DNA of 23,464 bases, from assembly GCA_024626585.2 (NCBI GenBank), contig JANKJI020000004.1, positions 27,832,988 to 27,856,451 of the forward strand. Direction: 5' to 3'. Shown here one piece after another: positions 4,976 through 20,450 of the stretch. The notes below the pieces were generated by a model. That model was not told the DNA's origin. It saw only the letters and a program-made list of their open reading frames with translations, and did no database searches. Position 1 is the first letter of the stretch. Each line of letters begins with the position of its first letter. The position numbers and the translations under genes are program-made. The DNA comes from Ginkgo biloba. Lineage: Eukaryota > Plantae > Ginkgophyta.

Positions 4976-6514
4976 NNNNNNNNNNNNNNNNNNNNNNNNN
5001 NNNNNNNNNNNNNNNNNNNNNNNNNNNNNNNNNNNNNNNNNNNNNNNNNNNNNNNNNNNNNNNNNNNNNNNNNNNAGCCATATTTATTTTCTTGGTGAGT
5101 TACAAAACCTAAACAAAGGTCCCTAAAGTATTGCCTATCTTTTTTAACTAAGAGGAACCTTAGAACTCCAAAGGGAGGAAAGGAAGTCTAACCCAGATCA
5201 TGATTACTAAAACCTCCTCCATTATGGGGTTAAAACCAAGGGACCGCGATTTCATGAAATACCTGCCTAGTTTAAAAACTAGGGACCCCCTTCGAATACC
5301 TTCTTTTTGTCACTTTCTTGCTTGAAAATCACAATAAAAAAAAACATGATAATCAACAATTTTTATCACAAAGGCCTAACAATGATTATCTCCATCACTT
5401 ATCCAACTCATGAAAAGTTAAACCAACTAATAAATGCATGACACAGATCCAACAACCAACAAAATATGGCTTTACTTCTGGGATAGGACATTACCAAGGC
5501 CTATTGGAGAAGGTAATGCGAGTTGTAGGCATTTTCCAAGGAATCCTTGTTTATTAAGAACATTAATGGTCAAGATTCACATTAATGCAAGTCAAACCAA
5601 CAGTGTCGAGACTTACTTGACAAGATGCAACCAAAAAGGACAACTAATAGCACGCATAAGGTGCAACCTATAGCTTCAAATAAGATACAACCAATTGTCT
5701 ACTAATTTTTTCCCATCTTAGATAGCAAAACTAGGTCACACGCTACTATGAGTTTAAGCATGCATAGACACCTTCACCATGCTCAAAGAATAAAATAATA
5801 AATCATGCATTCATAAGCCTCATAAGAGTTAGTAAGAATACATCAGTATAATGCTCTCACTATTATACCAATTATTCTCTTGGAATGTCACAATAGTAGT
5901 CTAGATGGTTAGGATAATATTCAAACCTTTATTCCCCCTCATTACCCCAAATGGAAGGGTATAAATACAAATGGAGGAGAAGATTTTCCAAATGATGCCA
6001 CCTTCCATCCACAAAAATAATTTCATTTCATTATTACAATTATGTTTCTTAATTCTGATTAGCAGAATAACAAATGAGAGTACAACAACATAATCTTTAT
6101 TGTGGCTGATTATATCCAGGTAGTGATTGTCATACCTAGACTTGCAACCGGCAGTGTGCAATGCTCTGACCGGTTTCCTATCCATCATTAGTTGTGATCG
6201 GCCTTTAATTTCCTATGAGCAACATTTTCAGTGCCCTACGACTGACTGTATACTTTGGTGGGATTGTATAAGCATTATGACTGATTATATTACCTGCAAC
6301 CAATTATATATTTTGTCACAACCATGTATATTCTGTTGCAACTGACCATAAAGGAGATGGCCAAACTACATTCTACTTCTTATACTATAATGTTATTTAC
6401 CAAGCATACAGTGTCCAGCCTAATGCTCAAATCATTCAAATACATTTTGAAAATTTCCCCCTATGGTAGAAGAATCGGTACCTGAAGATTCATACCACTA
6501 AAGCTACGATCAAA

Positions 6515-6526
6515 GCTCTGATACCA
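6515..6526 (-). other. Primer-binding site (tRNA-iMet) of an LTR retrotransposon
   Basis: Minus strand TGGTATCAGAGC, perfect 12/12, preceded by ...ATATCA-AG (LTR-terminal CA at 6529-6530). This implies an LTR remnant to the right of 6529. Confidence 0.8.
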
Positions 6527-6944
6527 CTTGATATGAAACAAATGGGGTTCGTTGTGTGCACACCTTGTCTAAAAGTCAAAAGAGAAAAAATTAAAAGGAT
6601 ATTTGATGATGTAAGGAAGTCTCAAGATATGGTTATATCTTGATTCTTGAGTNNNNNNNCATTATTTTGCACATAAGATATGTGAATTCAAAGATTAAGT
6701 TAGTATCATTTTCTTTTCTCTTTTTTCTTATTTTTTATGCATATAAAAATCTCTCTTCTTCTAAATCATTATTGGCTTTCATAGATTAAGTGGAGGATTT
6801 GGTCCTCAACAATTATCTATATGACCAAAGTCTTTAATCGCATGTGCAAAGAATATTCTCTTCATTGCACTCGTAACTTTTATTTTTCAAGTTTTTACAA
6901 ATTTAAGAAATCCATTACACTAATTCATAAAAATTAAGCACACA

Positions 6945-8070: not shown

Positions 8071-8201
8071 TTACTCTTTTCTGCCAAAAAAATCATACAA
8101 CAGTGAAAACGACATACAGCACTGTTGTATCTGTTCACTGGCCATATTGTTAGAGGTGTCGTCAATAGGAATTTCATCTGCTTCCATCCTCTTATTCTTC
8201 T
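8071..8201 (-). CDS. Last identifiable coding exon of the uncharacterised plant protein (EKNKRMEADEIPIDDTSNNMA...)
   Basis: Acceptor ttggctacAG at 8202-8203. The phase-1 join G|AG gives LYE-KNK. The frame is open to TAA at 8071-8073, but the true 3' end is uncertain (alternative donor at 8138). Confidence 0.65.
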
Positions 8202-8293
8202 CTGTAGCCAAGGCAAGAATACAAGATGGTGAAATCCTTTGCACAAAAGCTCAGTTGGACTAAGACTAATAATGAAACAAAGCATTGCATTAC

Positions 8294-8604
8294 CATATAA
8301 AGAGTGCAAGGGATGTTGTGACATATATGTTGAGAAATCCCTTGTATTTTCAACTTTCTTCTTCGGCTTGCGATGTAAGATGCGCTGTCTTTGAGAATCG
8401 CATATAAGAGGAGCAACTCGTGCTGTAGAAGCTTTTGCAAAATGTTGATTGTTCGCCGACTTTTTAGCTCGAATTCCTTCTAGTAAATGGTCATACTTGG
8501 AAGCCTGTGATTGAAGCTCCTTAATCCGTAATTCAAGCCATCGACATCGCCATTCAATGCCACATCTATAAGCTTTCCACTCAAGTGACAACGGATTTTT
8601 CCTC
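8294..8604 (-). CDS. Core exon of uncharacterised plant protein (Arabidopsis AT4G37440/AT3G59670/AT3G50040-like family; KANSL1-like helix)
   Basis: Acceptor tcttgttctctcacAG (8605-8606) and donor G|GTAATG (8293). Translation RKNPLSLEWKAYRCGIEWRCRWLELRIKELQSQASKYD...RKPKKKVENTRDFSTYMSQHPLHSLY matches the recalled family pattern W..F..P..WRC.W.EL..KELQSQA.KYD...YMS.H.LFSYYE. Confidence 0.9.
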
Positions 8605-11600
8605 CTGTGAGAGAACAAGAAGACTCATCATATTGTAAGAACTACAGCACCAATGCATCCTCACAAATGTCAGGACAAAACAAAAAACCATAAGATCATT
8701 TAGTGTTGCAAGCCTGGAGAACAGAAAGTACAACTTTTACATTCAGATTAATAGGGAAGTAGTTCCATTTCGTTTGACGGTGACAGTAAGCTTACATACA
8801 AGGTAGATTGAAATTCTATACTAATTTGATTATTGACAAACATCCTGAAAGCAGTTCTCTGTGCAAGTTCTGGAAAGAAATTAGTACGTTTTTGAAGGAC
8901 AGAAGGCCTTGCTTTTCCTTTTCAAGATAGGTGATACATTGGTTATAACTAAAGCCATAACAGTTCATAGCCAAATTATGCAATCCTCTACGAAGCAACC
9001 CAAACATTTTGTACCTTTCAATATTTGGAGATACAATTGATATGTACACTTCTATTGAGGGGGAGGAGGGGGCGGCCTCAATTGTAGTTCATTTCTCCTA
9101 CATTTAGAAGTCATGTCTTTGGGTTTGAGTGCTTTGGCACCATCAATTATAGTAGGTAAGCAAATTTTATTTCAGAAGTTAGTTTTGCATAGACCTTGGA
9201 GGCAGTACCTTCACCAATACGGCTTCCATTTTGCATTCCCATTTGCAAATTGAAAAATAGAGAAAGTGTTCAACATTCCTCTCCTATTCCCATTGTCTCA
9301 ATTCTTGTAGGAGGTGCAAGAGCTCAAGATGGCCACAAGGCACAAAAGGAAATTTTTTCCCAAGTACACAATGAGGCAAGATTCTTCTAACAATGCTCCC
9401 AAATGTCCAAAACAGTACAAACGAATTATATCATTTTTGGTTGTCGCAGACGGCACAAAGGCCATGGATGAGTAGGAGGCATTCATTTTTCAGTCAAGAG
9501 ATGGATCTCTGTTAGAGAAGACAATGTACTTTTGCTGCTGCCCAGTTTGGGTCTGGGCTTACTAAACTTTCAATGCCCTTAGGTGCATTGTCTGCAATGA
9601 AGTACATATAACCTTTTGTCATATGCCCAATCAATGAGCCTAGATGAAAGTCAATATCTCTTAGTATATTAAAAACATGATTGAGATTTGAAGTAGCTCA
9701 AAAACTTTCAAGCAAAAGGAGGTTTACAATGTCCATAATGCTTGTTTCAAGTATCATGAAGCCAAACATAAGATCAAAGATTGCCCCTTCTTAGCTCCAG
9801 AGGCTGGGCCTAAATCAACCCAAGGCCCAGAGGAAGTTGTCAATGCTCAACCTTCTAGTGAAGATAAAGAGAGCCCCCACACCACTGTTACAAAAGAAAA
9901 ATTCAGGGAATAAGGTAATTCCAATAAATTGTATCAACATGGCAAAACTACCACGGGTTCAGCTCATAGCTTGCCACCTTCAAAATCTACACTCTTAGAA
10001 GTTAGGATAACTGACACAAATGCTAATCCTAAGAAGTGGGAATCAATCTCCTCCCCTGATTTATTAGTAATCGTATATAGACTGTTAGTGGTTAGTCATT
10101 AGACATATTAATGATGGAATTTTCACATGTCTTGGAGAAATAAATGGGGTCAATTAATTCTTTATGGGGAAGGAATTGATGTGTCATCTNNNNNNNNNNG
10201 TCACTAGCTGTTCAACCGATTTTCTGTATAAATAATTTCTTGTTGATATATAATATGTGAGAGTCGATTGGGAATTCAGATTATGCGAGAGGTAATCTGG
10301 GTTCTTACGCGTAATATCAATGAATACAATAGAGTTATCTTGCCTTGATGGAAGTCTATCTTGTGCATGCCTGTGTATTGATGGACAAATGTATTCTATG
10401 TAGGAGTGAGAATGATTAGAGACTATAGTGTGATCTATTAATGTATTGACAGTTGAAATCATAGGCAAGATTTGGTATCTATTGTGATAATAACTGCCAG
10501 CAGGGCAGTAACTGCTAACATTGGTTTGGTTGCCCTAAAAGATCTTTTGACTGCACATTCTAGATGGACATTGTAACTTAAAGGAATGTGGTTGTGACGA
10601 ATCTGTTAAATCTGATGAATATGCAGGAAACCTACCGTGTTGGTGATTGCTGTTTGCCTGGTGATTGCCATTTGGAAACTATAAGGGCAATGATGGGTTT
10701 TTGTTAAGATCACAATAGTTTAATAAGTGGTATCTGGAGCATAAGGCAGGTATGGAAGGTCACAACCTCATTATTAGGTGGAGTACCTTTTTGTTGGAAT
10801 GATTAGGTGTGTAAATAAATAAGGCATTCCTGGCTGCCTTTAATGGCGTGCTAGAAACCAGGTAGGCAGGGGATCTTCTGATGCCATNNNNNNNNNNNNN
10901 NNNNNNNNNNNNNNNNNNNNNNNNNNNNNNNNNNNNNNNNNNNNNNNNNNNNNNNNNNNNNNNNNNNNNNNNNNNNNNNNNNNNNNNGCTCCTTGTGCTA
11001 ACTGTCTCCCCATCTAACCCCATTAGAATTTCAAGTTGCTAGGTTTGGCGCCAAGCTACCGTCCTCCCAAGTGTTCAATTGGTGACTCCATAAATGCGTT
11101 GTCCAGTCCTTAGCCAATCATAGCTTACCATGGGGTACTAGCCCATACTTTCTCCATTCTCTTCTGTCACTGGTAATTGCAAAATTTAATGGTGCCACCT
11201 TCCACAATAGTTGCTCACACGTGCTTTAATAACTACCCTCAATATCTGTGCCCCAAACTCCATTTCATTATCTGTTGGGTTCGTGAAGTCGGACTTCTTG
11301 AAAGGTGTAGGCGCGGCTCACAACCAACGACCCTGATTCTCTGATCCCTGATTAAACTCAGATTTATAACTTCGTCAAGCCTGTAGGGTTATGTGAGGCG
11401 CGGCCTAGCTGGAAGAGCTCCAAACCTCCGATCCTTCGAAGGTGTGATGACCCGATGTCCCATACTCCCGGCGTGAACTTCAGAGACTCCTCGGAGCAAG
11501 ATTTCATAAAGATTTTGGGTCTGTGGGAGTTACAATAGGCGCACTTGCTCTTCCATGGCAAGAAGCCCGAACCCCCGATAGCCCGATGCTCTGAGGTCTC

Positions 11601-14239
11601 CCTCCTTTAACCTTCTCACGGAACCCAAATCATTCCGACACCTTATTGAATAAACCTTCGGGTCTGTCGAGTCGGACATTTGATAAAGGTCTCGGGCACA
11701 GCCTCCCCGACGTCCCGAGCGCTAACCTCCCAGTCTTCCGATTAGATTCCATTTTATAACTTCGTCGGGTCCGCGGGATTTATTTGAAGTGTGGCCTTGC
11801 TTGAGTTACAAGAGGCTCAATTAGCTCGATGGTCCGACAACCTGATGACCCGACATCCACTTCTTCACCCAAGGATCCCAATGACCCGATGATCTTCACA
11901 TAAAAGGGATCTCGATCAACAAAATACCCCGACCGCNNNNNNNNNNTTACACTGGCCCGCTGCGCTGCCAAAACTACTATGTTACGCTTGATGCACCCAA
12001 GCCAAACTGCCAAAAAATATAAGTCGTCATGTCAACGCCGATTCTTAGACCAAAACTATGCACGTTATCGGAGTGCGACTGTGATGCTCCTGCATCATGC
12101 TGTAACAATCCCGCCTCTTAAACCTATATGCTAAAGATCATAAAGTAATATAAAACATAAANNNNNNNNNNNNNNNNNNNNNNNNNNNNNNNNNNNNNNN
12201 NNNNNNNNNNNNNNNNNNNNNNNNNNNNNNNNNNNNNNNNNNNNNNNNNNNNNNNNNNNNNCATTCAGTTTTTTTTAATATATAAATACCTTTAATCGTT
12301 CCTATTAAAAAAAAATGTTATGCCAAAAGTAGGTATATGCAAAGTTTTAGAAGTGGGATTGTCAGTACTTAGGTCGACTTGCAACAAATGACTCCTATCT
12401 CTGTTGTTGGTTGTGTAGACCACCTATCTGGGTTTACTATGTTGATAGCCAAACCTCTGGGCACAAGTTGTGCTTACTGTTAGTGCCTAGCAACTATGAA
12501 CAATCTGTTAGACTCCACTCCTCAATTCCGATACTAGTAAGGGTGCTAGGCACTAGCTCTATATCAGCCTCTCTTTGGCACAAGGATTATGGTAGAAGTT
12601 ACGAATAACCACCCCATTAGCAATTATTTATTTAGATTCATTTTTGGTACGGTCACCAAACCCTAAAGCTACAAAATAGCCTTGAAACTAAAAATACATT
12701 GGCATGGTTAACAAACCCTATGACTATAGCAATAGCCATAGAGTTAATTCCCATTAGGTTAAACCCTTGAGCAACAANNNNNNNNNNNNNNNNNNNNNNN
12801 NNNNNNNNNNNNNNNNNNNNNNNNNNNNNNNNNNNNNNNNNNNNNNNNNNNNNNNNNCCTCTCACCTACACCAAACTGCAAGCCAAATAAACCCAATGTT
12901 TCTACAATTCCAAGCTGTCTCCTCAAACAGGACAGATAACTGCTTTGAACAAGCAGATTAATTTGCATGTTTAAGGAAGCAGGGGAAACATAATCTGATC
13001 TGAATGTCCGCACTAGACAGTATAGTTATGTCATCATGGAGATCAGGCAAGAGAAAATCCGAGACAATTGGCACTCTCTATGACAAATAAAAATGCTGAA
13101 TCTGATTTAAAATTATGTAATTTCATCCTTGCAAGCTTAACCACTTTCTAACTATCGAACAGAGCCAATTTTTGGTCCCTTCAAAGTGCCATCGCTTTGT
13201 AGTCCTTATTATGTTTCCTTGAAATTCATACTAATTCCCATTTTCTTCAACTCCACAGATATGTGACAAAATACCACTGATTCAACCGCCATCAATGGTC
13301 TAATTGACAGGAACAAGATAGAATCTCTATATAGTTGCAGTCACGCCTGTCAAACATTATTGCACATTTCAACAAACTAAATTTCTACTTCTTGCTGGTG
13401 ATGCTCTGGGGTGATGCGCTGGGTTTAAAGCAAGTTTTGTATTTCTACTGCAAAGCAGACAGAATGCATAATCCAGAGGTTTGAGTCTGTTTTCTCTAGG
13501 TGACCACAGAAGATAAGAACCTGCTAGGTGTAAGCTAAAATTTCTGTTTACAATGTTGGCTGTGGTTACCGAAAGTAAGTAAAAACATTATGCTCAGAAC
13601 ACTGGCTGCAGTCGATTACAAGACTAAAACCTACTGGGTTGCAATATTCATAGTTCTAAACAAGACAGCAATTGGAGCGATATTGAAGTCCAAGACAACA
13701 ATATATCTTCTCTTAACGTATACTCCCCAGCTTTAACTGTTGTCAGAGGCAATAAGTTACCATGCGTATGTACTAGGATCACTAAATAACAGTATGCCAA
13801 TCCAAACATTAACAAGTGCAAGGTCCCCACTTCGGATGGATTCTGAATCATTCCCCTTTTCTGATGTTCCTCGGCACCAACATAACATAACAGTCTATAT
13901 AATGAATTTCATGTTGGTACAATTCAGGCTTGTGATTGATTCACTTCTTATTTTAGGCCAACTGAGGCCCATGACTGTATACTGTAGGTTTGGCCCTCTT
14001 ATGAAGTCTAGACTAAGGCAGGATGATCAAGAGTATATCAATTTCTATCTTTGTTTTCAATTCCAAATACATATAAAGTCAGTGCATTGATAAAATCATT
14101 CAATAAACTTGGGATTGCATATCTACAATTTTTACTGCACTGAAAAGAATCCTGATATTAGTAAAACAATCAAAGAAAGTTCACAAAACAAAAATAACTG
14201 CAACAAAATTCGAAAGAATGCTTGAGAATGGATCCATAC
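8605..14239 (-). other. Long GT-AG intron (5635 bp including gaps) containing repeat or TE insertions
   Basis: Phase-compatible splice sites at both ends; no convincing coding exons within. Confidence 0.7.
11273..11936. repeat. CpG-rich diverged tandem duplication (~385-390 bp period), probably TE/LTR-derived
   Basis: Starts TGTTGG at an abrupt GC shift. Paired blocks: agtcggac...aaaggt (~11287 / ~11670), tttataacttcgtc (11363 / 11753), tgatgacccga (11445 / 11843). Confidence 0.65.
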
Positions 14240-14424
14240 CTCTTTATAGATGCAGGAGTTGCAGCTTTATTTGCATTGAGCAACTGAGACTCTACTTCAG
14301 CAGCATCAAATGTTTCCTTATTTCCTATCTCAACACACCCGGTCCTTCCATTACAAAGCAATAATGCTGAAGCTGGGGCCTTAAAATGCCTTGATGCCTC
14401 GGCAGGGTTTTCAGAAACAGGCAT
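14240..14424 (-). CDS. Upstream coding exon of the same gene (MPVSENP...DAAEVESQLL...SIK)
   Basis: Contains the family EVES motif. Donor AG|GTATGG at 14239 is phase 2 and joins G|AGG of the core exon to read SIKRRKNPL. Exon lengths 185+311+131=627 nt, i.e. 208 aa plus stop. The 5' boundary (ATG at 14424 versus an upstream acceptor) is uncertain. Confidence 0.75.
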
Positions 14425-16949: not shown

Positions 16950-17850
16950 AAAGATATTAGGAAATAAGACAAAGATCTCTCCACTGTTCAAAACCAAGAA
17001 TTAGAGCATTTTATAATGCTGAGTGATCAAAGGGTCCAACCTTTAAGGGCGCTGAGCAAGGAGGTATCCAGAAAGAATGGAGATAGAAGAATCTCAATTG
17101 CTTTGAACAGTAAAATAATCCATGCAGATCAACACAAGTAGACAATCTATGGAAAACGATAAGAGGCAATATGAGCCAGTTTGAAGTTAATATGCTCCTG
17201 TGGCACATGGCAAATAAAGCTATCCTTAAAGTAGAACACATGAAAAAAGGCAGAACTTGTGACATGTCTACCATATAAGGATCCACTGGAACACACATTT
17301 TAAGAATGTATAGAAGTGAAGCCCCTGATACAACTTTAAAGTGGCAAAGTTTCACCTCGTATCAAGCGTCTTGCAAACCTCCAAATAAACTTCACCATAG
17401 GGGTTGTTAGGACCTTTCTTGCCTTTGGCTGGAATTAAACACTTCTTGTGCACATTGACTTAGTTAATCTGTTTCTAGAGTCTTTTGTTTTCAAGCCTCT
17501 GCATAGTTCTTATTGGACAGCACCTTGATTATAATTGTGTATCGAAATACTAGAGTCGAAGTAGTATAATTTGAGAGGAACATNNNNNNNNNNNNNNNNN
17601 NNNNNNNNNNNCTCAAAGCCATAGACAATCTTAAAATAGCTGACTTCTATAATAACTTGGGAAAAGCAAGGCATCACCATACAAGGGATACTTGGAAAAA
17701 GGGATGAAGATACCTCCAATGTACAAAACCAAGAATTGTAACATTTCATAAGGCCAAGTGATCAATGGATCCAACTTGACTAATACTCAGGAAAAACAAG
17801 GCATCACTATACAAGGCATACTAGCAAAGAAGGATTAGAATCTCTCCATC
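16950..17850. repeat. ~130-bp diverged repeat: tandem copies at 17651-17780 and 17781-17850, plus a third partial copy at ~16950-17040
   Basis: gaaaa.caaggcatcac.atacaagg at 17661 and 17791; caaaaccaagaatt...agtgatcaa.gg.tccaac at ~16989-17040 and ~17724-17775. Confidence 0.65.
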
Positions 17851-17968: not shown

Positions 17969-20450
17969 TTATCAATAAAAAAGATATTGGCAATGATTAA
18001 GCAAATAAACAATCAAGTATTATAAGAGAAGAGATTACTAGTAACCCAAGTTAGCTGAATCACCAACATCCATATAGGAGTCACAGCAATCATGCAGGAG
18101 TCACAAGAAGTTTAACTTTTCAATAACTAGACTCTTGATAGAATTAATTAAAAAGATTATTGTGACCTGATAGATTTAGAAGAAATTGACGAACTAAACA
18201 TGAATTGGCATCGAATGACATCTCATCCAAAGGAGTCAAACACCCAAATACTGTGATGACAAGACCTTAATGACATGACAAAATCAAGGATGACATGGCA
18301 AGACTATAAGGATTAGACCTTGACGACATGGAAAAGTCAATGTGATGAGCACCATAGTCCTTAGGTATTAGTTACTAGATGTTTTTTGTATGTACTTAAG
18401 AATAAATCCTTAAATGCTCATCATAAGTTAGTGAACTTGTATTTTTATGTGTATTTTAAAGTTCACTTATGTGAATTGTTAGTTAGAGACAAGACCATCT
18501 CCTTATAGGAAGGATAAGTTAGAGAAGATAGGAATCAATTCCTAGAAGCTAGGTAACAATCTTGAGGTGAGCAATTTTCTATTTAAAAGCCACCCTACTC
18601 TTTATACAAACAGGTGGAGTTTGAATAGATTTTCTACATTATCTAAAAATCTATAAGCAAGTTTTATTTTTCCTTCATTTTACAGTTTCAAGAATTTATC
18701 TTCTCGTCTTGCTCATATCATACCAAGAGGTAGAGGTGGTAGACCTCAAAACATTTATTATCAAAACTCTATCTAATCCTTGGCCTCGTCAATATAAAAC
18801 TTACTAGGGGAAGACAAAAGCTATCCATTATCACCTTTGTTTGCATTGGGGGCACAATCGTCAAGATTGTACTTTAGGAAAGAATAGTGGTCATTTCAAC
18901 TATGATGACTGCGAACCAAGAGACTGTGAATGGGAAATTGCAAAAACAATCCATCCAATAAATTGAAAATATCTAATCTCACTATGATAATTCGTAATCT
19001 TGTCATTTCTTTAAATCTCCAAACATGAAGTGGTAAAATTGTGACTACCCCTAAGAAGGATGAATCTGACTTCCCCAATTCTGTCAAAGAAAAAAATGCA
19101 TCTTCAAGAAGTCGTTCAGACCATCCAAGGCGTAGTGAAAGAAGCAAAGCAACAATGACTTGCAACCTAGTTAACACAGATATCAAAATTGAAGAAATTG
19201 CCCAATAAGAAAGGCAAGTAGGTTTCTAGCGTAAATGAGCTACTACCCCTTGCGAAGAAGCATCACAAGCTAAAACAAACAATTCATCAACTCACACTCC
19301 ACCACCAAAGGCCAATCCAAAACTCAGCCATGAACAAAAAAATCAACTTGCTTCAAAACTTCCGTAAAGATTTAAGAATCAACATTCCCCTCACCACTAC
19401 CATTGATGGTGCATTAAAGACCATAAACTTAGTAGACCATTTGAATGAAGATCCAAAAGTAACAATCCAAATTTATGAGAAAGTGATCATGAAAACCACT
19501 ATGGATATTGGACATAGTGTTAAGGTATTACCAAAATCAACATGGATTCAACTTGGGGAATCAAAATACATTTCTCCTAATTACTCTATCCATCCTGCCA
19601 ACTACTCAGAAATTTGGCCTCTTGGCACACTACCTAATGTATTGGTAACCATCAAGGAAGTAATTGTTAAACAAAACTTTGTCGTTGTACGTATGGAAAT
19701 TAATGCTACTTCGTCGCCAAGCAAGCAATGGTTATATGACACAAAAGCAATTCAAAACTAGGGGAAGCATGCATTCCCACTCAATGGCAATGGGAAGCAC
19801 GTAGTTCTACCATTGGTTCATATGGTCCTCGTGCAATAAATGTTTATGATTGTGATAGTGCTTCAAGCACCACATGATTGCTACTAAGGCTATTACTAAC
19901 TCCTATTTTGAAACAACATACCAAGCAACCATAGATCCTCACAATATAACTGAGGATTACCCAGAGGAATCAAATATCAATGGAGAAATTGTGGTGGACA
20001 ATGATGATTCGACATTTGAGCACATGTACTGGTTATAAGGAGCATATGAAGATATTGAATCTCACAATTGATTTTGACAAATCATTGTTCATAATAATGA
20101 ATTCATCTCTAGAAGAAGAGAATGACAAAGAATATGTCAGTGTACCGAGTGATTTCTATTCATCCACATCTGACTATTCTTCCTAAGATGAATTTGTGGA
20201 AGAAGATGTTGAAATCACCAAAAGTTTGGAAGATCCTCAAATCGCTATCTCTAAAACAATGCCTAAATTCAAAAATAGTGTTCTATCCCATAATGGGATG
20301 CAGGACATTTAGCATTGCATAAAAGTTTGGATGGATGATCACTAATGGAAGAGATAGTCTTGGATGAAAATGCTTCCACTCACATTGTAAGGCCAAGAAT
20401 TTAAATGGTATGTTGCTTCTATCGAAGAATTCATAGATTGGTTGAAGATG
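17969..20450 (+). mobile_element. Decayed Ty3/gypsy element carrying the protease; LTR-like region upstream
   Basis: Short internal repeats (gacatg... at 18255-18340) and a TATA-like ctatttaaaag at ~18579 precede the protease remnant. Boundaries are approximate. Confidence 0.4.
19330..19830 (+). pseudogene. Ty3/gypsy aspartic protease (retropepsin) pseudogene
   Basis: PKVTIQI...MDIGHSVKVLPKSTWIQLG...YSIHPAN...PLGTLPNVLVTI...FVVVRM...KQWL..TKAIQN*G follows the retropepsin pattern D.G.SV..LP..W..LG...AN...PLG...V.V.I...FVV...LLGRPWL...W. The catalytic motif is degenerate and W has become a stop at 19759-19761. Confidence 0.8.

Follow-up and report, generated by a model that had tools for sequence, protein, structure and literature searches.

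A Ginkgo biloba gene from a streptophyte family homologous to the animal NSL-complex scaffold KANSL1/NSL1

We analysed a stretch of 23,464 nucleotides from Ginkgo biloba (contig JANKJI020000004.1, positions 27,832,988 to 27,856,451; hereafter the window), and the gene on its minus strand appears to be a gymnosperm member of a streptophyte family of KANSL1/NSL1 orthologues acting as an NSL-like scaffold, a reading to which we give a probability of roughly 0.7. That the plant family as a whole is remotely homologous to KANSL1 we regard as highly probable. A published comparison lists Arabidopsis orthologues for KANSL2, KANSL3, MCRS1, WDR5, OGT, HCF1 and MOF, and none for KANSL1 or PHF20 (PMC6607013, Table 1, 2019). 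Because the family carries the same ordered docking motifs as KANSL1/NSL1, it is probably the missing plant KANSL1, that is, the NSL subunit that published comparisons list as absent from plants. In the literature, of which most subscription papers were not searchable, we found no paper that connects plants with PEHE or KANSL1, and weak PEHE flags on a few plant proteins exist in the precomputed Pfam tables, so the relationship may have been noticed before.

Results

Gene model and transcript

The core exon of the gene (311 nt) is bounded by an AG acceptor and a GT donor, and it was found spliced in RNA-type contigs from three studies; the RNA nature of these sequencing runs is a guess, which the spliced joints support. 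The parts of the gene in the window are, in order of transcription:

14240 to 14424, minus strand: upstream coding exon, from a plausible ATG, ending in the EVES block of the family and a phase-2 donor
8605 to 14239, minus strand: 5.6-kb GT..AG intron, containing N gaps as well as a GC-rich, repeat-like insert near 11000-12100
8294 to 8604, minus strand: core exon of 103 codons, with helix, WIN-like motif, basic patch and HP block
8202 to 8293, minus strand: 92-nt intron, with the joint 8201/8294 in runs X1, X2 and X4
8118 to 8201, minus strand: third exon of 84 nt, a linker, ending at a GT donor (8117)

The upstream exon was identified by an RNA loose end at 8606 that matches 14240-14270 in three runs, and its junction is the same as in locus L003. 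Its homology to the Cryptomeria exon (nhmmer E=2e-10, identical donor) is limited to 14321-14240, the last 80 nt, and the borders of the core exon match Cryptomeria residues 431-534. A spliced product of 208 aa had been proposed in the preliminary description, and this is wrong because exon 3 closes with a GT donor and the mRNA is joined from 8118 to further exons that lie beyond the window. Loose ends of at least 255 nt were present at 8118 in three runs, with contigs reaching about 0.5-1 kb further; the transcript continues in frame past 8118, its first codons resemble the next exon (GELKS) of the conifer paralogues, and the letters spliced on after 8118 are absent from the window. The Cryptomeria gene, which spans 60 kb, shares these junctions; at the site of the 8118 donor it has an intron of 20 kb, and the exons that come after it encode a second coiled coil and PEHE. 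The Ginkgo gene has long introns, and the surrounding DNA is AT-rich with gaps. Searches of the window by tblastn, HMM and nhmmer found no downstream exons and none for the bromodomain or the acidic SSSF block. Since its PEHE exons would fall outside the window, we infer the PEHE of this copy, which very likely lies in the downstream exons beyond the window.

Two irregular transcript patterns were seen. In run X1, two contigs diverged after exon 3 at 8118 with a mixed consensus (agreement 0.6), unlike X2 and X4, which may come from alternative splicing, from an allele or from a close paralogue. In run X2 (record 5), one contig kept the 92-nt intron (window 8173-8323), from unspliced RNA or DNA carry-over.

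Several other stretches of the window looked like repeats or mobile elements. At 6192-6652, inside the downstream intron, contigs of run X4 occurred at a depth of about 6, one with a long loose end, and TGGTATCAGAGC near 6527-6516 (minus strand) resembles an LTR-retrotransposon primer-binding site. The insert at 11000-12100 in the long intron is GC-rich (48-49%), carries a 27-nt direct repeat 390 nt apart and had no Pfam match; it is probably a transposon remnant. Imperfect direct repeats of 84 nt and 64 nt (76-78% alike) at 16957-17850 are repeat-element-like. On the plus strand, 19029-20200 contains two open frames (59 and 179 codons) and, after them, an acidic stretch; Pfam offered no credible match, and the region is probably the decayed gene of a mobile element.

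Plant family and position of the window copy

The exons of the gene were searched one at a time; a word search with the core exon returned one match, and the large search returned 266 relatives at E up to 1e-3. Named relatives came from Spirogloea, Mesotaenium, liverworts, mosses, lycophytes, ferns, Welwitschia, Cryptomeria and angiosperms, and the database names of the members are only “uncharacterized” or “Bromo domain-containing”. The window gene is placed in a streptophyte family with Marchantia MpBromo7, Cryptomeria LOC131053417 and Selaginella LOC9640435. We also take Arabidopsis AT3G59670, AT4G37440 and AT3G50040, filed in PANTHER as PTHR34057 “elongation factor”, to be members. The sole find of a metagenome scan was a moss-like locus, L002, whose architecture is the same.

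The core exon of the window has 58-63% identity to conifer proteins and shares their intron positions, and the tree of the core region put the window copy as sister to Cryptomeria plus four conifer-like transcripts (98/92), on a branch of ordinary length (0.28, median 0.27). Most long members from Zygnematophyceae to gymnosperms have an N-terminal bromodomain, and compared with other members of the family the window copy seems to have neither this bromodomain nor the acidic block. The Asn of the bromodomain is the acetyl-lysine-binding residue; the alga, liverworts, moss, lycophyte and ferns retain it, whereas the conifer clade that is sister to the window copy has Tyr at this position. Fusion of a bromodomain to a KANSL1-like scaffold was observed in the non-flowering proteins P0174, P0220, P0016, P0226, P0009, P0033 and P0178, and the Marchantia protein is named MpBromo7.

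The Cryptomeria-exon homology stops at 14321 and the remaining 9 kb of the window have no acidic block or bromodomain, so this copy may be N-terminally shortened. Together with the Asn-to-Tyr change in the sister clade and the two different continuations after exon 3 in one RNA run, this raises the alternative that the window copy is a shortened paralogue, either a partial subunit or competitor that would bind WDR5 and perhaps MYST without a bromodomain, or a decaying gene. We consider this unlikely but worth keeping in view: the frames are intact, the splice sites are conserved, expression was seen in several studies and the branch length is ordinary, and the missing upstream exons could sit beyond the window or inside its N gaps, the Cryptomeria gene being 60 kb long. 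A shortened paralogue would be compatible with the KANSL1 relationship of the family.

Relationship to animal NSL1

The animal side of the NSL1 comparisons was a single sequence, P0237, a 522-aa protein encoded by an intronless gene (10001-11569 of contig L004) with PEHE above the cut-off, a WIN motif with Ser at -1 and a Cys/His stretch after the WIN motif. L004 is a gene-dense, intron-poor contig of invertebrate type, on which presenilin, DOT1 and ORC5 are neighbours. We take P0237 to be NSL1 from its WIN, Cys/His and PEHE features, in line with what is known of the family. As a compact NSL1-like protein of half the length of human KANSL1 with all conserved blocks kept, P0237 is a useful minimal scaffold for comparison. 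The features described for NSL1 by Dias et al. are the WIN motif (Ser at -1 in fly), the Cys/His stretch and PEHE (PMC4018492).

The plant-only profile A4 retrieved one non-plant protein, which was P0237 (E=1e-9), and profile A1 matched it with E=5.5e-7 at full database size in two collinear domains; used as a single query, P0237 matched plant proteins at 40-44 bits. The block order was alike in plants and P0237: acidic block, helix, WIN, basic patch, HP, DIxN and PEHE. When PEHE was left out, the non-angiosperm core still scored 14.7 bits against P0237 (P=2e-6) in the correct region, the acidic block plus core scored 18.1 bits and the angiosperm acidic block plus core scored 14.6 bits, and for these three profiles the scores were equalled in 0 of 250 shuffles and 0 of 250 local shuffles. 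In hhalign the core without PEHE reached a probability of only 40% (E=3e-4), and one local shuffle came near this value. The ESM features of the core exon, again without PEHE, had a KANSL1 cluster as best named match (0.79), which we use as a lead only. Searches with the core exon alone gave no match in Pfam, generic coiled coils only in the PDB, and only the family itself and generic helices in the Atlas fold search. The proposal that this plant protein is a KANSL1 homologue holds at the level of the family, mainly on evidence other than the helix from which it was made: PEHE, the plant-only profile, the reciprocal matches and the collinear blocks.

The helix

The proposal was based on a 40-residue peptide of the core exon, within the following feature:

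8430 to 8585, minus strand: long amphipathic helix with two invariant tryptophans, including 8460-8579 and aligning with P0237 residues 107-146

AlphaFold predicted one long helix at residues 7-58 of the core exon (pLDDT above 90 over most of it), then disorder. Translation of window 8579-8460 (minus strand) gave exactly the peptide quoted in the preliminary description, and the 12 of 40 identities claimed there with a human KANSL1 string were found again in a count by eye. The human string looks sound, because P0237 matches it at 21 of 40 residues (by eye).

Against P0237, the window peptide aligned ungapped in the same register with 9 of 40 identities and a BLOSUM62 score of 35, the next best position having 3. 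Of 5000 shuffles, 1 scored as high as this pairwise alignment, and of 5000 local shuffles 17 did, which puts p at about 2e-4 to 3e-3. A helix-only profile reached 1.1 bits against P0237, which 7-15 of 250 shuffles matched, so it was not significant; helix-only hhalign gave a probability of 0.3%, and helix-only language-model features had no usable named match in the Atlas. A profile of the helix with the WIN/basic stretch gave 14.7 bits (P=2e-6, 0 of 250 shuffles). The homology conclusion is right, but the 40 helix residues alone are insufficient to carry it.

The window copy had also been suggested as a bridge between KANSL1 and the plant family. The residues behind this idea did show the expected distribution, R5, I8 and L15 being present in 97%, 100% and 93% of non-angiosperm members versus 4%, 15% and 30% of angiosperm members, but they are not special to the window copy. 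A3 is peculiar to it (3%), and the tree puts the copy inside the conifer clade. The bridge residues are mostly general to non-angiosperm members, and the window copy is a conifer-clade paralogue and no special bridge; the moss, lycophyte and fern members are a better one.

WIN-like motif, basic patch and HP block

Three further blocks follow the helix in the core exon:

8406 to 8429, minus strand: WIN-like motif STARVAPL, its Arg at 8420-8418 preceded by Ala (-1) and followed by Pro (+3) and Leu (+4); putative ligand of the WDR5 pore
8355 to 8390, minus strand: basic patch, a candidate nuclear localisation signal or nucleic-acid contact, placed after WIN as in NSL1
8295 to 8327, minus strand: YMSxHPL block, compared through the spacing of HP from Trp

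The WIN assignment in the window is a sequence match, to the pattern [A/S]-R-x-x-P, and KANSL1 has a WIN peptide with conserved Arg592 and Pro595 (PMC4018492). The Arg aligns with R161 of P0237 and is invariant in alignment A5, and it follows the second helix Trp by 40 residues in the window and 41 in P0237. The moss motif is near-identical to the animal one (SCSRTVP in Physcomitrium, SCSRTIP in P0237). Arg at +2, conserved in animals, is not kept, and P0237 also lacks it. Among non-angiosperm members, 25 of 30 had Ala-Arg or Ser-Arg in the WIN motif; among angiosperm members, 19 of 71 did. In the Zygnematophyceae proteins P0039, P0147 and P0174, long low-complexity insertions were observed between helix and basic patch, and at the usual spacing no WIN motif was clear.

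YMSxHPL probably corresponds to the HPVL block at the end of the NSL1 zinc-binding region; HP comes 73-78 residues after Trp in plants and 120 in P0237, and MAFFT positioned YMSxHPL and HPVL otherwise.

PEHE domain

Pfam PF15275 (PEHE) was found in 9 of 10 non-angiosperm members, the best scoring 34.1 bits (E=4e-8) where the cut-off is 34, with Selaginella at E=5e-8 and Cryptomeria of the sister clade at E=2e-6. The matches cover positions 1-48 (at most 72) of the 127 in the Pfam model, and the P, E, H and E residues are invariant or nearly so in the plant members. Hhalign of the PEHE region with P0237 gave 95.9%. In KANSL1, the PEHE domain is the part that binds MOF (PMC4018492). The plant PEHE profile had the MSL1-MOF structures 4dnc (E=8e-4) and 2y0m (E=1e-3) as top matches in the PDB, and the PDB set has no matching KANSL1 chain of at least 20 residues, so MSL1 is on top by default.

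Changes in flowering plants

The angiosperm members have lost the bromodomain, and their WIN and PEHE are degraded. In 76 angiosperm members PEHE was undetectable and only a worn DIxN block was left (hhalign 80% over 32 columns), and a rough regular-expression census found Lys instead of the WIN Arg in 44 of 71 members.

In the C-terminal third of angiosperm proteins (e.g., P0015, P0017 and P0053), a D-x-L-I-x-N-Q...E-E-L block was noticed at the place expected for the PEHE helix, and in Aristolochia a His stands at the spacing of the PEHE His. The block is possibly a degenerate PEHE helix; hhalign on the angiosperm C-terminal third aligned only the DIxN block that precedes it.

Discussion

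Comparison with KANSL1/NSL1

KANSL1/NSL1 (MSL1v1), the scaffold of the animal NSL complex, shares with the plant family a disordered scaffold and the ordered blocks from the acidic block to the C-terminal PEHE, among which the likeness of the Trp-rich helix is significant only together with WIN and the basic patch. However, the plant members are shorter than human KANSL1 (1105 aa), they have a second coiled coil before PEHE, and those of non-flowering plants have the added N-terminal bromodomain. A putative zinc-binding Cys/His stretch follows WIN in NSL1 (PMC4018492), whereas the putative zinc-finger cysteines and about 45 residues between WIN and HP are absent in all plant members and the HP block remains. 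Because the zinc-finger cysteines are absent, we file the plant family as a variant or orthologue and not as a canonical KANSL1.

Proposed mechanism

In our proposal, the protein would be a nuclear scaffold, largely disordered and carrying short motifs for docking. By analogy with the animal structures, the PEHE helix would bind and stimulate a MYST acetyltransferase (in plants, one of the HAM1/2 type), the WIN Arg would enter the pore of the WDR5 propeller with a KANSL2-like protein on the opposite WDR5 face, and the N-terminal acidic block and helix may contact other subunits such as an MCRS1-like FHA protein and a KANSL3-like hydrolase. Active promoters would be where the resulting NSL-like complex acetylates histone H4. 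In animals, KANSL1 is a partner of MOF/MYST, WDR5, MCRS1 and PHF20 and stimulates H4 acetylation. The proposal follows the animal complex for PEHE-MOF, WIN-WDR5, KANSL2 on WDR5 and H4 acetylation (PMC4018492, PMC6607013). More speculatively, the fused bromodomain from algae to gymnosperms would read acetyl-lysine and substitute for the reader subunit PHF20. One functional hint agrees with the proposed role: AT3G59670, grouped in a family with AT4G37440 and AT3G50040, acts as a transcriptional activator in planta when it is tethered (PMC5485742).

Reasoning from the animal complex, we think it likely that the family serves as an NSL-like scaffold in non-flowering plants. The window copy retains the helix, WIN, basic patch and HP block and very likely PEHE, and has seemingly lost the bromodomain and acidic block; that it is fully functional as such a scaffold is an even bet.

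Alternative explanations

A true KANSL1 homologue could also exist without a separate plant NSL complex, as an accessory of INO80-COMPASS or NuA4/PEAT, with an angiosperm form that no longer binds MYST. Arabidopsis WDR5a occurs with INO80 (PMC9824250), INO80-COMPASS holds WDR5a and accessory subunits, NuA4/PEAT hold HAM1/2, the KANSL2 orthologue is annotated as INO80 subunit D-like, and angiosperms lose a recognisable PEHE and often the WIN Arg. All this fits such a re-use, but PEHE and WIN are retained together from Zygnematophyceae to conifers, which indicates selection on both contacts in one protein, and we rate re-use as rather improbable. We infer that a plant NSL complex exists, and for the fuller scenario, in which streptophytes have a real NSL complex on a KANSL1 orthologue, an ancestral bromodomain fusion replaced PHF20, and flowering plants lost the bromodomain and eroded the MYST and WDR5 motifs, rewiring the scaffold, we see slightly better than even odds.

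It is very improbable that the family is instead an MSL1-type protein with a coiled coil and PEHE. The PDB matches were to MSL1, plants have a second coiled coil before PEHE, and the PEHE helix pattern (P-W, E, DD, aromatic, RH, E) of MSL1 (2y0m, 4dnc) is common to plants. But MSL1 wins in the PDB by default, as stated above, the acidic block, Trp helix, WIN and DIxN all match NSL1-type P0237, and the Atlas lead is KANSL1. MSL1 is not known to have a WIN motif. MSL1 has an MSL2-binding N-terminal coiled coil and an MSL3-binding C-terminal half of PEHE, and plants do not fit this arrangement: there is no evidence in plants of the MSL1-specific parts, and the plant WIN and DIxN blocks are of KANSL1 type, in comparisons that covered MSL1 through its PDB chains.

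A chance likeness of generic coiled coils, with PEHE as a separate, shuffled or convergent module, could account for the non-significant helix and for the generic helices in the PDB and fold searches with the exon, but it is largely refuted, and hardly probable, in view of five collinear blocks, a WIN spacing equal within one residue and PEHE-free profiles that find the right region with P about 1e-6 to 1e-7.

Significance

KANSL1 is the core scaffold that the published comparison could not find in plants, where the other listed subunits and the MYST enzyme are present (PMC6607013). Naming a KANSL1 orthologue makes the question of whether plants have an NSL complex testable by single residues, namely the WIN Arg and the Glu and His of PEHE, and it offers a function for a family that ranges from streptophyte algae to crop plants and is listed in databases as uncharacterised. 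The KANSL1 scaffold would then date to before the plant-animal split, and its history in plants would be one of lineage-specific redesign, with a bromodomain fusion, its later loss, and the decay of PEHE and WIN in angiosperms.
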